From contig NW_003314524.1 in NCBI RefSeq assembly GCF_000143415.4, forward strand, positions 1 through 16,110: 16,110 nucleotides of DNA, in the 5' to 3' direction. Numbering within the stretch: the first letter of the stretch is position 1; each line of letters begins with the position of its first letter. The DNA is from Selaginella moellendorffii. Its lineage: Eukaryota > Plantae > Lycopodiophyta. The position numbers and the translations under genes were made by a program. Shown here one piece after another: positions 6,334 through 14,033 of this stretch. The notes under the pieces were generated by a model. That model worked only from the letters and a program-made list of their open reading frames with translations. It searched no databases and had not been told where the DNA came from.

Positions 6334-6920
6334 ATTCCGGTCTTCTACTTGAGTTGTCTATAGTTATTATATCCATGGCCACCTCCACAACGCGTCCACG
6401 TCGCACGGGGCAAGAATGTACCGCGCGTCATCCACGCGTCCCGCGCGGCCAAGTCCACCATGCACCGAGAATACGGGGTTTGTTTAATTATATGGTATGA
6501 TATTTTATTGTAAGAACCCGGTTGCTGAGATGATGGCTATGCCGAAGGGTCCACTCAACAAGGATTAACAATTTGCTCTTTACCCCTTGTTCTGGTCACA
6601 AGCTCAGAAAAACAGCTTAGACTAGTCATTTAGGACATCGGTCTCCCAAAAAAACGTCAAACCTTGCCAATAGTAATTTAAAATAGAATAAAGTAAACAA
6701 TATTCTTAGCTCTAAGTTTACGAAGTCCAAACACAAAATAAATTCGGGAAGGAAATGCCGGGTCGCTCACACCATTGAAGATGGTAGCGTTGGACGCGCT
6801 CGGTTTTCTCATTATCATTCTCGATAGAGTCACTTTAAGTTGGATATCTGAGATACGGTGCACAAGCTTGATTCTGTGCGATCATCATAAAACCTGCACA
6901 GAAAAATAAAACACAGCGTC

Positions 6921-7025
6921 GGCACACTCCCTTCGCAGGAATTATCCTGATCAGGTCGTGAGGGTCTCATCTCAGCCTACCCTTTCAGAAGAAAGACTCT
7001 TTTCAGGGCAAGCACCCCTGGTGCC
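6921..7025 (-). ncRNA. TPP (thiamine pyrophosphate) riboswitch aptamer in the THI1 3' UTR
   Basis: Minus strand reads GGCACCAGGGGTGCTTGCCCT...AGGGTAGGCTGAGATGAGACCCTCACGACCTGATCAGGATAATTCCTGCGAAGGGAGTGTGCC. It shows P1 (GGCAC/GTGCC), a P3 stem, the CUGAGA motif, the ACCUGA..AGGAUAAUUCCUGCG.AGGGA P4/P5 element, and lies 176 nt after the stop codon of a thiamine-biosynthesis gene on the same strand. Confidence 0.96.
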
Positions 7026-7200
7026 AGATTTCATCAGTTTCAAGAGCTTAAGCTTGCAAACCAAATTACCAAACAAGTAGTAGCAAACAGAAAAATACTT
7101 ACTGAAAAAACAGAAAGTAGCAGCCTTATCCCATGGAGAACCACACGCTCGGAAGATGATTCACTCCACTCGTAAAACCAGAGATTTTTCGAGTGAGTGA

Positions 7201-8527
<1,327 letters not shown>

Positions 8528-8638
8528 CTACGATTGATCCTGGTCTCTACAAAGATTTGTCAATGTTAAACTTCGAGCGAGCATAAGTTGGAGCTCCTGT
8601 CTCGAGACAAATCAAATCACAGACAAAGATCGGGAATT

Positions 8639-9694
8639 TTAGTAGATTGTGCTGGCGAGAGACTTGACCTCTTTGGAGACGTCCGTGTAATCCTCCATGA
8701 AGCCTTGCTTTTCTTCGTCCTCCAGCTTGCCTTTGACAGGATTTAACAGCACCAGCATGCAGCAAGCCGGACGCTTCTGAGCGGCGGCGCCTCCCAAATC
8801 CTGAAAAGATAGAAAAGGAATGAGTACAAAGGTAAAAAAGGATGAGAAACAAAAACGATGCCTCTTTTGAAGGAACGTAGATGTAAGGAATGTCCGACTC
8901 TTCGCAGAGTATTGGCAAGTGTGTGATTACATCGATTGGTGAGATATCTCCTGCGATTACACAGAGCCTGCAAAGTAGAAAGCAGAAAGATGGATCTGGC
9001 ACTGTAAGATTGCAAACTGGAAGCTCTTACCCCTTCTGTCCCCGGCGAACAGCTTTTACGACCTCCTTTACTCCCCTCCTGAGTTGCTTGTTCTGAGCCG
9101 CTGCAAAAACAAAGACCGCAAATCTTGTCACATAAGAGAGTAATACTTGTAAGAAAAGATAACCTCAGACAGCGAATAGCAGCAGCAAGGCGAGAAAAAT
9201 CCCACCTTTCAGCCGGTAATTCCAGAAAAATTAAGTCATCATAGGCCTAAAGACCAAGAGCAGGAAAAAAAACTTAAGAACGAAACACAGGGCCTCAGCC
9301 AGCCTAAAGTCGCAGCACCAAGGCGAAGCAAAACTTCGTCTTTCAGCCGGTAATTCCAGAAAAACGAAACATCATCGGCCAAAAGAACAAAAAAAGAGAG
9401 AGAGAAAAAAAAAGTGGAGAAATAAAGCAGAAAAGCCTCAGCAGCCAAATCGCAGCATCAAGGCGAAGAGATCCTCGCCTTTAAGCCGGTAATTCCAGAA
9501 TCAAAACGATCCAAACATCATCGGCTATTGCACGCATTCATTCTTCCTTCTAGATCCATACCTCTCCGGACGAGCTTGAGCGTCTTCTTACAAAGGCGCT
9601 TGCCCGCTAGTGGCCTGGCGATGATCGACACATGCTGCCGCTTCTTGCGATCCTTTTCCTTGTCTTTCTTGTTGCCCTCGCCGTCACTCACCAT
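8639..9694 (-). CDS. NHP2: H/ACA snoRNP subunit NHP2 (L7Ae family), 4 exons (9694-9562, 9100-9031, 8967-8862, 8800-8639), 156 aa
   Basis: Spliced product contains [77 protein letters not shown] and KRPACCMLV. Exon phases are consistent (133+70+106+162 nt). Confidence 0.93.
9161..9247 (-). ncRNA. Box C/D snoRNA copy C (snR77/SNORD65-like), in NHP2 intron 1
   Basis: Terminal stem GGCC/GGTT, canonical C box ATGATGA, guide CTGGAATTACCG plus D' CTGA, internal hairpin AAGGTGGGA/TCTCGCCTT, D box CTGA; ends about 60 nt before the 3' splice site. Confidence 0.88.
9291..9380 (-). ncRNA. Box C/D snoRNA copy B (snR77/SNORD65-like), in NHP2 intron 1
   Basis: Terminal stem GGCC/GGCC, C box ATGATGT, guide CTGGAATTACCG followed by G and D' CTGA, internal hairpin CGAAG/CTTCG, D box CTGA. 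Confidence 0.86.
9434..9526 (-). ncRNA. Box C/D snoRNA copy A (snR77/SNORD65-like, 18S rRNA 2'-O-methyl-U guide), in NHP2 intron 1
   Basis: Terminal stem AGCC/GGCT, C box ATGATGT, guide CTGGAATTACCG, degenerate D' CTTA, internal hairpin AAGGCGAGGA/TCTTCGCCTT, C'-like TGATGC, D box CTGA. Confidence 0.82.
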
Positions 9695-9703
9695 TGCCAC
9701 ATA

Positions 9704-9748
9704 AAACCCTAGCCCCTAAACCCTAAGCCCTAAATCATGAACCCTAAA
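9704..9748. promoter_or_regulatory. Telo-box cluster (AAACCCTA and variants) directly upstream of the NHP2 ATG
   Basis: AAACCCTA at 9704 and 9718, plus CCCCTAAA, GCCCTAAA and AACCCTAAA variants within 45 nt. Telo-boxes are typical of plant ribosome-biogenesis and snoRNA genes. Confidence 0.75.
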
Positions 9749-11171
9749 CATTCCAAAGAACGATCAAACCGTCAACTTTTCTTATAGTGGAACGTTAGGT
9801 CTCAGTGGTTGAAGCGTCCAAAGTATCTCTCTCCTTTTTTTCTTTCTTTTGACCCATGGTCTTAAATGTCCTGTGCGTGCTTTTGATAACGACCAAGTTT
9901 GAAATGTATGACACTCTTCCATGTTCCTTGTCCTGCAAAGTTTCACGTAGCTCCACACCGAAACACGAAATCTCCAACTTAACCTTTTGCGGCCAAGATC
10001 AAGAGCACTGAACGAAAACAAGTTCTCCCAGCCCAATGCGTGAATCAAAAGCCAACAGCCAGCGAAAAATGCGTGAGTTTTGGCCCCATGATTTTATTTC
10101 AGTCACATCCTTCTCATGAGACTGGCCTCCTGTTTGATCGATGCCAACAAAAGCTTGTGCAAGTGGATTCAACACGGAACATTCCACGGATCCTTCATGA
10201 CAAAGTCAACGTTTGGATCACGCTTCTAATCGCGTGTAAACCTCCAAAAGGCCCCCATGCTCCAGCGTTGAAGAAATCGGGATCGATCGTTCGTAGCTTT
10301 ATTCGATTCAATCACGGAAGTTGAATCCAAACACATGTTGCTAAGAGCCACTGGCCAGCATCTGATCCTACGCAAAATAGAAAATCACTATCCAATTTCT
10401 TCTAGACTTCCAAATGTAGGGGAAGAAAGGTTGCAGGCGCAAAGATATGTTGACCCGGAAAATACTGAATGGTAAAATCTAGGATCGTATTTTAGGGTTT
10501 ATGCGAAACTTCTAAAGTTCCGACGCGAGCTCCCTATGCCCCTAGAAAGCCACAGGACTTGTCGCGATGCCCTTGTCCCAAGATAAACACCGTTTGAATT
10601 TCCCGCCATTTTAAACTAAGGAGTTGAATAATCGGGGGTCTTCGTTTGCCCCAGAGCTTCGTAGTGTTATTTATTCTCGCATTGTCTCGCCGTTCGTCGT
10701 GTTCTTCGTCGCGTCGCCGCCGTCGTGATTCGCGGGACCGCCCTCGTTTGCTGTCGGCCTGGTAAGATGATCGATTGGCGTGGTTTGATCCCGATTTCTC
10801 GCAGATTTTGATGTTCCTTTCGGTTAGGTCTGCTCGTTCTATCGATCGAGGTGCTCTAATCGATCGATCGTGAGTGGCGTGTATGCCGCTACTCCATCAG
10901 CCGCAAAGATCCCGTGGAAATCGTCTTCGTTCCCAAATTTCCGCGCACAGGTGTCGCGTTTCTACAATTCCGTTGTGGGACTGACCGTGGGACTCTCTTA
11001 AAACAGAGAAAAGGAGGGAGGGAGGGACTGACGTCTCGCAACAACCACTGCTGTGAAAATATCCTTTGTGTCCGGGAGCGCTTTAAAGCACTGGGCAGGA
11101 AGAGCGCTTTGGATGGATGGCTGCTGGCTGGGCCGAGGATTTGTGGCAAACTTTTAAGCTCCGAATTTATC

Positions 11172-13960: not shown

Positions 13961-14033
13961 CGCCGCCCGAGGGGCTCGAACCCTCGGCCACAAGGTTAAG
14001 AGCCTTGCGCTCTGCCGACTGAGCTAGGGCGGC
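13961..14033 (-). tRNA. tRNA-Lys(CUU), 73 nt
   Basis: Minus strand GCCGCCCTAGCTCAGTCGGCAGAGCGCAAGGCTCTTAACCTTGTGGCCGAGGGTTCGAGCCCCTCGGGCGGCG folds as a full cloverleaf: acceptor stem GCCGCCC/GGGCGGC, anticodon stem CAAGG/CCTTG with loop CTCTTAA, T loop TTCGAGC; A and B boxes intact. Confidence 0.96.

Follow-up and report, generated by a model that had tools for sequence, protein, structure and literature searches.

The NHP2 gene and its spliced first intron

The DNA analysed here (the window, 16,110 nt of Selaginella moellendorffii contig NW_003314524.1) carries on its minus strand, at 8639..9694, the coding region of NHP2 (H/ACA ribonucleoprotein subunit 2), which on spliced translation is divided into four exons (9694-9562, 9100-9031, 8967-8862, and 8800-8639) and encodes a protein of 156 aa. 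Both the span of this model and its 156-aa product are those of an L7Ae-family gene called in GCA_000143415.2 on scaffold GL377828.1, of which the window is the entire sequence in reverse orientation, exon 3 matches Pfam PF01248, and residues 1-156 of the spliced protein are 63-64% identical to angiosperm H/ACA ribonucleoprotein complex subunit 2. This end-to-end identity to named subunit 2 proteins supports full-length orthology to NHP2, the name given to the gene in the original prediction, and the codon position of intron 1 is common to the NHP2 genes of Magnolia, Acorus, Nelumbo, and Selaginella. With NHP2 exon 4 as the query, a protein word search gave no candidate and a representative search matched mostly mis-called fragments, and all NHP2 proteins listed in a search seeded with gene call P0017 were angiosperm. 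The neighboring gene encodes a thiazole synthase, with a first exon that is 100% identical to SELMODRAFT_163429.

Intron 1 (9101..9561, minus strand) is a GT-AG intron of 461 nt, compared with 63 nt for intron 2 and 61 nt for intron 3, the latter being of the GC-AG type, and the spliced model together with the RNA-seq junctions upholds the size difference noted in the original prediction. It consists of a 35-nt leader, three snoRNA-like units, two spacers between them, and a trailer of 59-60 nt that separates the end of unit 3 from the 3' splice site. The RNA-seq data covering 8600-9760 comprised one raw stranded run (X29) and three contig sets, all of them long-RNA libraries or contigs. In X29, the 9100|9562 junction is crossed by 124 reads, which bears out the splicing of the cluster intron as predicted, and the junctions of introns 2 and 3 are crossed by 100 and 86 reads, respectively; the 9100|9562 joint is also present in contigs from X1 and X19. 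Depth in X29 is about 60-165 over the exons and 0-5 over intron 1, and intron and exon reads agree in strandedness, in an orientation that fits minus-strand RNA. A 519-nt unspliced contig from X1 (9073-9591) contains exon 2, the whole intron, and exon 1 without interruption, at a depth of 20.6 versus 2376 for the exons (about 1%), and because this contig spans from exon 2 through the intron to exon 1, intron 1 is transcribed within the NHP2 pre-mRNA. The intron is co-transcribed with NHP2 and spliced out, with a small fraction of the RNA staying unspliced.

Three telo-box cores, minus-strand elements that read AACCCTA on the plus strand, are located at 9705-9711, 9719-9725, and 9740-9746, which places them at -17, -32, and -52 from the NHP2 ATG, around the transcript start, and substantiates the telo-box promoter that had been proposed for the gene. 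RNA-seq depth drops between 9692 and 9730, with molecule ends accumulating at 9693 and 9707. A different origin for the cluster would be a transcript of its own that starts inside or upstream of the intron and not as part of the NHP2 pre-mRNA, such that residence in the intron is incidental, and from the work of Leader et al. in 1999 the processing of plant clusters is reportedly not thought to need splicing. Published Arabidopsis snoRNA clusters, in addition, are mostly independent pol II units with telo-box promoters. In the case of NHP2, however, we regard a separate transcript as highly unlikely: the X1 contig is continuous across both exon-intron borders, the strandedness of the X29 intron reads matches that of the exons, no pile-up of molecule starts is present within the intron in the RNA-seq over 8600-9760, the sole telo boxes are those at the NHP2 start, and the 35-nt leader between exon 1 and unit 1 is too short for a promoter. 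We therefore treat the NHP2 pre-mRNA as the source of the cluster, whose three units lie on the sense strand of one spliced pol II intron, the arrangement by which an intronic cluster is recognized.

Architecture and conservation of the three units

Each of the three units displays a C box, a D box, a terminal stem, and an antisense element of at least 10 nt with its predicted target nucleotide opposite position 5, and these are the features of the box C/D class. Unit 1 (9434-9526, minus strand) is closed by an AGCC/GGCU stem and contains a C box (9515-9521), the guide (9486-9498), a D' box CUUA (9482-9485), an internal hairpin (9460-9481), a C' box UGAUGC (9455-9460), the pentamer GGCUG (9442-9446), and a D box (9438-9441). 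Unit 2 (9291-9380, minus strand) has a GGCC/GGCC stem, with the C box at 9369-9375, the guide at 9347-9359, D' CUGA at 9343-9346, a hairpin with one A.C mismatch at 9320-9342, C' UGGUGC at 9315-9320, GGCUG at 9300-9304, and the D box at 9295-9298. In unit 3 (9161-9247, minus strand), a GGCC/GGUU stem encloses the C box AUGAUGA (9236-9242), the guide (9213-9225), D' CUGA (9209-9212), the hairpin (9187-9208), C' UGCUGC (9182-9187), CGCUG (9170-9174), and the D box (9165-9168). The C boxes of units 1 and 2 both read AUGAUGU, and each unit has CUGA as its D box. The units are 87-93 nt long, as anticipated for three copies of about 90 nt sharing one layout, and their start-to-start spacings are 134 and 139 nt, with a repeat finder, alignment, and a pattern search in agreement.

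The 13-nt guide CUGGAAUUACCGG is identical in the three units, and the 15-mer CTGGAATTACCGGCT, which comprises the guide and the start of D', occurs three times in the window, always on the minus strand of intron 1, against an expectation of 0.02; none of 200 shuffles reached three copies. Identity among the copies is 100% in the guide and 75-92% in the stem and C box, and it is 31-50% in the spacer from the C box to the guide and 31-67% in the flanks, as would be expected under constraint on the functional elements of every copy. The terminal stem has 4 bp in each unit, with 100% of the alignment cells paired and an outermost pair that is A-U, G-C, or G-U, and when the stem and the hairpin are taken jointly, 97% of the cells are paired, compared with 32-54% for slid-partner controls. 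Two hairpin pairs and one terminal-stem pair have changed on both sides, but the pairing control is not significant with three sequences, 82 of 500 shuffles scoring equally well, and the compensatory changes give qualitative support only. The hairpin is contained within the minimum free energy (MFE) fold of unit 1 (z -2.6) and of unit 3 (z -2.4); the MFE fold of unit 2, in which the hairpin has its A.C mismatch, does not include it.

The description in the original prediction therefore held for the layout and the pairing, and it needed correction in its details, with D' being CUUA in unit 1, C' being degenerate in units 2 and 3, and the hairpin of unit 2 being mismatched. There is one degenerate internal box per unit, with the result that individual copies could be weak, and this raises the prospect that only one or two of the copies are working methylation guides, the others being drifting duplicates or units that serve in assembly or as chaperones. 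Along with the CUUA of unit 1, the C' boxes of units 2 and 3 (UGGUGC and UGCUGC) do not contain the GA dinucleotide, the mutation of which cuts methylation 5-10-fold in a test construct (PMC3116282), the unit 2 hairpin is mismatched and outside the MFE fold, and the accessory pentamer of unit 3 is CGCUG and not GGCUG. On the other hand, even strongly divergent C'/D' motifs bind snoRNP proteins and function (PMC3116282), and in all three copies the C and D boxes are intact, the terminal stems are paired, and the guide is preserved at 13 of 13 positions, though their non-functional parts have fallen to 31-50% identity. The absence of haplotype differences within the units also speaks against drift of some copies, and we judge a cluster with only one or two working guides to be unlikely, though it is the alternative that deserves most weight; three working copies are the reading adopted here.

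Those haplotype data come from a second copy of the locus on GL377585.1, which was found through the 90%-identity cluster of the neighboring gene and also contains the three units. Between the two haplotypes, intron 1 shows five differences, of which three fall in spacer 1 (9381..9432, minus strand; 52 nt, 69% U, and 92% pyrimidine) and two in spacer 2 (9248..9290, minus strand; 43 nt and 58% U), and none within the 270 nt of the units. Only about three of the five differences are substitutions, and the spacers carry mutation-prone homopolymers, so that this pattern is a suggestive but weak pointer to constraint on the units, because homopolymer runs mutate easily. The composition of the two spacers matches the U-rich character ascribed to them, and spacer 1 is presumed to be a site of endonucleolytic or exonucleolytic separation of the units. 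Run X19, which was considered as an independent related species, was rejected in that role because it carries the alleles of the second haplotype at 9617 and 9665.

Family assignment and the predicted 18S rRNA target

A search of the whole window at the Rfam gathering threshold returned only a tRNA and a TPP riboswitch, and no snoRNA. In a permissive Rfam search of 9000-9700 (701 nt), RF01178 (snoR77Y) was the best family for all three units, with 27.4 bits (E 0.0071) for unit 1, 31.3 bits (E 0.00073) for unit 2, and 34.4 bits (E 0.00012) for unit 3, scores that remain below the gathering score of 52. In the RF01178 alignments the consensus guide UGGAAUUACCG is identical to the guide core of the units, and the internal hairpin is scored as an insertion, which accounts in part for the shortfall. 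A check with Infernal and Rfam had been suggested from the start, and it identified the expected family, to which a custom covariance model also assigns the units, at scores under the Rfam threshold.

The custom model (R1), intended as a line of evidence that does not depend on the Rfam seed, was derived from a scan of metagenome contigs with a pattern consisting of the C box, a gap, the guide, and D', which matched at least 120 contigs and provided, among the matches listed, 33 distinct full-length candidates in which a D box and a terminal stem are present, 27 of which were aligned to build the model. R1 was searched against both strands of 68.7 kb, made up of the window, the second-haplotype locus, and the NHP2 loci of three angiosperms, and it found only the three units in each haplotype, with 33.4 bits (E 2.8e-5) for unit 1, 38.8 bits (E 1.6e-6) for unit 2, and 39.5 bits (E 1.1e-6) for unit 3. 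The guide contributes to these scores by construction, because the training set was chosen by the C box/guide/D' pattern and units 2 and 3 match that pattern exactly, unit 1 having D' CUUA; the alignments are full-length, however, and the similarity continues beyond the guide through C', GGCUG, the D box, and the stem. The two model searches together support the assignment of the units as box C/D snoRNAs of the snR77/SNORD65/snoR77Y family.

The same evidence bears on whether the units are snoRNA genes at all, and not a tandem repeat with chance antisense to 18S rRNA, such as an antisense rDNA insert or a splicing-regulatory repeat. This reading can draw on the sub-threshold Rfam matches and on the RNA data being long-RNA reads and contigs, but the complementarity to 18S rRNA ends exactly at the guide, with a G next to D' and no rDNA-like flank, the C box, D box, stem, position of C', and GGCUG align with those of members from many unrelated eukaryotic contigs, and the terminal stem has a compensatory change. 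We consider it the least probable of the alternatives, to be entertained only barely, and continue with the units as snoRNA genes.

The family to which they are assigned has a well-characterized target. Arabidopsis 18S Um582 was mapped by RiboMethSeq, with AtsnoR77Y as its guide, and is equivalent to human Um627 and yeast Um578 (PMC8583080); Neurospora crassa CD24, which has a D' guide for 18S Um575, has been equated with snR77, snoR77Y, and HBII-135 (PMC2780460); and AtsnoR77Y (given there with Um580), HBII-135 (Um627), and snR77 (Um578) form one clan that is traceable to the last eukaryotic common ancestor (PMC3511168). These three reports confirm the yeast and human sites that the original prediction had named. 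The 18S context used here was taken from the universal primers CCAGCASCYGCGGTAATTCC and GCGGTAATTCCAGCTCCAA and not from Selaginella rDNA, 18S rDNA having been looked for in the retrieved loci and found in none. Positions 2-13 upstream of D' form 12 contiguous pairs with 18S CGGUAAUUCCAG, position 5 from D' is an A that faces the U of CGGU, and the target context CCAGCAGCCGCGGTAATTCCAGCTCCAA matches the universal 18S primers. The base adjoining D' is a G, with no match to rDNA. The arrangement is that of a D' guide to the 530-loop uridine, in line with the D'+5 placement on the U of CGGU that had been proposed, and the predicted target is the U of CGGUAAUUCC in Selaginella 18S rRNA, which would be equivalent to Arabidopsis U582.

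A further element may assist this interaction. In 23 of the 33 distinct members among the matches listed, the D box is preceded by GGCT(G), which lies at a variable distance within 16 nt; in Selaginella it is GGCUG in units 1 and 2 and CGCUG in unit 3. GGCUG is complementary to 18S CAGCC, which is situated one base 5' of the target duplex, and extra base-pairing is reported to stimulate methylation (PMC3116282), so that GGCUG probably adds extra pairing to 18S CAGCC. We infer this pairing from complementarity, since the main text of PMC3116282 does not name snR77. A second guide located upstream of the D box was considered and rejected, as the region upstream of D differs among the copies in both sequence and spacing and only the 4-5-nt element is common.

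Compared with snoR77Y (RF01178), snR77 (RF01181), and SNORD65/HBII-135 (RF00571), which make up clan CL00057, the Selaginella units have in common the box C/D architecture, a guide located upstream of D' and not of D, the antisense core UGGAAUUACCG, the same predicted target uridine (At Um582, Sc Um578, Hs Um627), and a D-proximal (U)GGCU(G). They differ in the 22-23-nt hairpin insertion between D' and C', which is absent from most members listed, in the G next to D', which is U in most members listed, in the two C boxes that end in U, and in scoring under the RF01178 gathering score.

Proposed processing of the cluster and its place among plant snoRNA genes

The best explanation of the locus, and one in which we have considerable confidence, is that NHP2 intron 1 contains three tandem paralogous genes of the snoR77Y/snR77/SNORD65 (HBII-135) family, with processing and 18S guiding proposed as follows. 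SNU13, NOP56, NOP58, and fibrillarin would assemble on the C/D kink-turn of each unit, and the precursor would be cleaved in the U-rich spacers, as in other plant polycistronic and intronic clusters, for which RNase III-initiated processing is a precedent. Exonucleases would then trim the products as far as the terminal stems and leave three RNAs of about 87-93 nt. Pairing with 18S CGGUAAUUCCAG in the 530 loop would involve the 12 nt upstream of D', as suggested by the complementarity and by the site mapped in Arabidopsis, yeast, and human, and the U of CGGU, opposite the fifth position from D', would receive the 2'-O-methylation. The lineage-specific hairpin of 8-9 bp between D' and C' may bring both degenerate boxes together.

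One minor splicing event touches on unit 3. A 63-nt alternative mini-intron with GU..AG ends (9101..9163, minus strand) is represented by the joint 9100|9164 in one X9 contig and one raw X29 read; its donor comes directly after the D box of unit 3, within the 3' half of the unit 3 terminal stem, and the resulting isoform retains the whole cluster and encounters a stop codon 14 codons into the retained intron sequence. This isoform may be splicing noise. It also suggests a regulatory role for the cluster, in which the C/D snoRNP on unit 3 hides the mini-intron donor and favors productive NHP2 splicing, and in which failed assembly exposes the donor and yields a transcript with the whole cluster and an early stop codon. 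We think such a role very unlikely, but if it were true, the supply of C/D snoRNP proteins would tune the output of an H/ACA protein, which would amount to cross-talk between the two rRNA-modification systems.

Several aspects of this organization have counterparts in rice, where 25 intronic snoRNA clusters are known; most of them have telo-box and site II promoters, and many reside in ribosomal protein genes. Rice Cluster 4 is an intronic same-family triplet (snoR28e-f-g), and Cluster 17.1 is an intronic, mixed cluster that includes snoR77Yc; rice intronic clusters such as these share with the Selaginella locus the placement of several snoRNAs in one intron of a pol II gene and telo boxes in host promoters, and Cluster 4 also shares the three tandem copies of one family. 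The hosts of rice clusters are often genes of translation or ribosome biogenesis, as is NHP2, though NHP2 is not among the snoRNA hosts found; the comparison with Clusters 4 and 17.1, which is one between a lycophyte and an angiosperm, covers their organization. In rice the snoR77Y family itself occurs in mixed clusters (snoR29-30-31-10-77Y-U49-snoR2), whereas in Selaginella it forms a same-family triplet.

Genes for snoRNP proteins are known as hosts as well. In human, the NOP56, NOP58, and DKC1 genes host snoRNAs, and in Arabidopsis the fibrillarin genes do. NHP2 resembles snoRNP-protein host genes such as Arabidopsis fibrillarin in having the guide in an intron, with protein and guide RNA coming from one transcript, but it differs in being an H/ACA-class protein gene that hosts C/D-class guides. 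In the NHP2 genes of Magnolia, Acorus, and Nelumbo, Rfam finds no snoRNA, the guide motif is absent, and R1 has no match, so that the pairing of the cluster with NHP2 either was lost or did not exist in the ancestral angiosperm NHP2. Among the matches listed (at least 120), no snoR77Y-family metagenome contig has NHP2 nearby; an L7Ae-like match on contig L113, 9 kb from the snoRNA, was rejected as NHP2 because it is like ribosomal protein L7a/eL8. No paper on NHP2 as a host of snoRNAs came up in a phrase search of the literature, which is a weak negative. A 2016 survey of 24 plant species, S. moellendorffii among them, does not include snoR77Y in its list of families conserved across land plants, nor did a search of its supplements find a C/D snoR77Y entry.

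The importance first attached to the cluster was overrated, as intronic clusters, same-family triplets, telo-box promoters, and a snoRNP-protein host have all been published in plants, and its organization was thus already known from the rice intronic clusters and the Arabidopsis fibrillarin hosts. What is new is NHP2 as the host, which is apparently undescribed, the lycophyte lineage, and the same-family triplet for snoR77Y. The cluster is real but biologically ordinary, and the view of how snoRNAs work is unchanged by it. The Rfam gathering thresholds miss the Selaginella cluster in genome annotation, and its absence from NHP2 in three angiosperms is in keeping with reports that snoRNA genes move from host to host. 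The locus adds a lycophyte orthologue, in three copies, to a snoRNA family that has been traced to the last eukaryotic common ancestor, and it indicates that the rice-type intronic same-family polycistron under a telo-box promoter is also present in an early-diverging vascular plant.

Splicing of NHP2 and its two haplotypes

Intron 3 of NHP2 (8801-8861, minus strand) has GC-AG borders, which 86 junction reads confirm, and in the second haplotype 8 nt are inserted right behind its donor, while intron 2 of that haplotype has lost 7 nt. The called NHP2 product is 159 aa in the second haplotype versus 156 aa in the window. At both 9617 and 9665 the alleles of the RNA-seq data set X19, which is labelled organism B, are exactly those of the second S. 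moellendorffii haplotype, and the label probably denotes no separate species.

An alternative intron of 63 nt (9101-9163, minus strand) is seen in one contig of data set X9 and one raw read of X29, and its GU donor begins directly 3' of unit 3's D box in the snoRNA cluster. Its removal leaves the entire snoRNA cluster exonic and brings in an early stop codon.

Other RNA elements in the window

A TPP riboswitch aptamer (6910-7029, minus strand; RF00059, 58.8 bits, above gathering) lies 3' of the coding region for THI1/thiazole synthase, whose first exon is at 8326-7421, and the second haplotype also has this aptamer (L002:7298-7417). The tRNA gene at 13961-14033 (minus strand; RF00005, 68.3 bits), found in the second haplotype at L002:270-342, probably encodes tRNA-Lys, because its anticodon loop reads CUU.

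The snR77/SNORD65/snoR77Y family in metagenomes

Four snR77/snoR77Y-like matches at an exact spacing of 3397 nt occur in the metagenome contig SL_4KL_010_BRINEDRAFT_10000661 (L064:2123-12351), and they form a tandem array of ~3.4-kb units with one snoRNA in each. Among the matches listed, further contigs (L008, L040, L070, L084, and L085) hold two copies with the same guide 0.5-2.1 kb apart.

In the alignment of 27 metagenome family members (A4), GGCU(G) is conserved right upstream of the D box, with GGCACCAG in its place in some lineages; the corresponding positions in the window are 9442-9446, 9300-9304, and 9170-9174. This D-proximal motif complements 18S CAGCC or CUGGUGCC, which directly precedes the methylation target on its 5' side, and it is a candidate for extra base pairing throughout the snR77/SNORD65/snoR77Y family.
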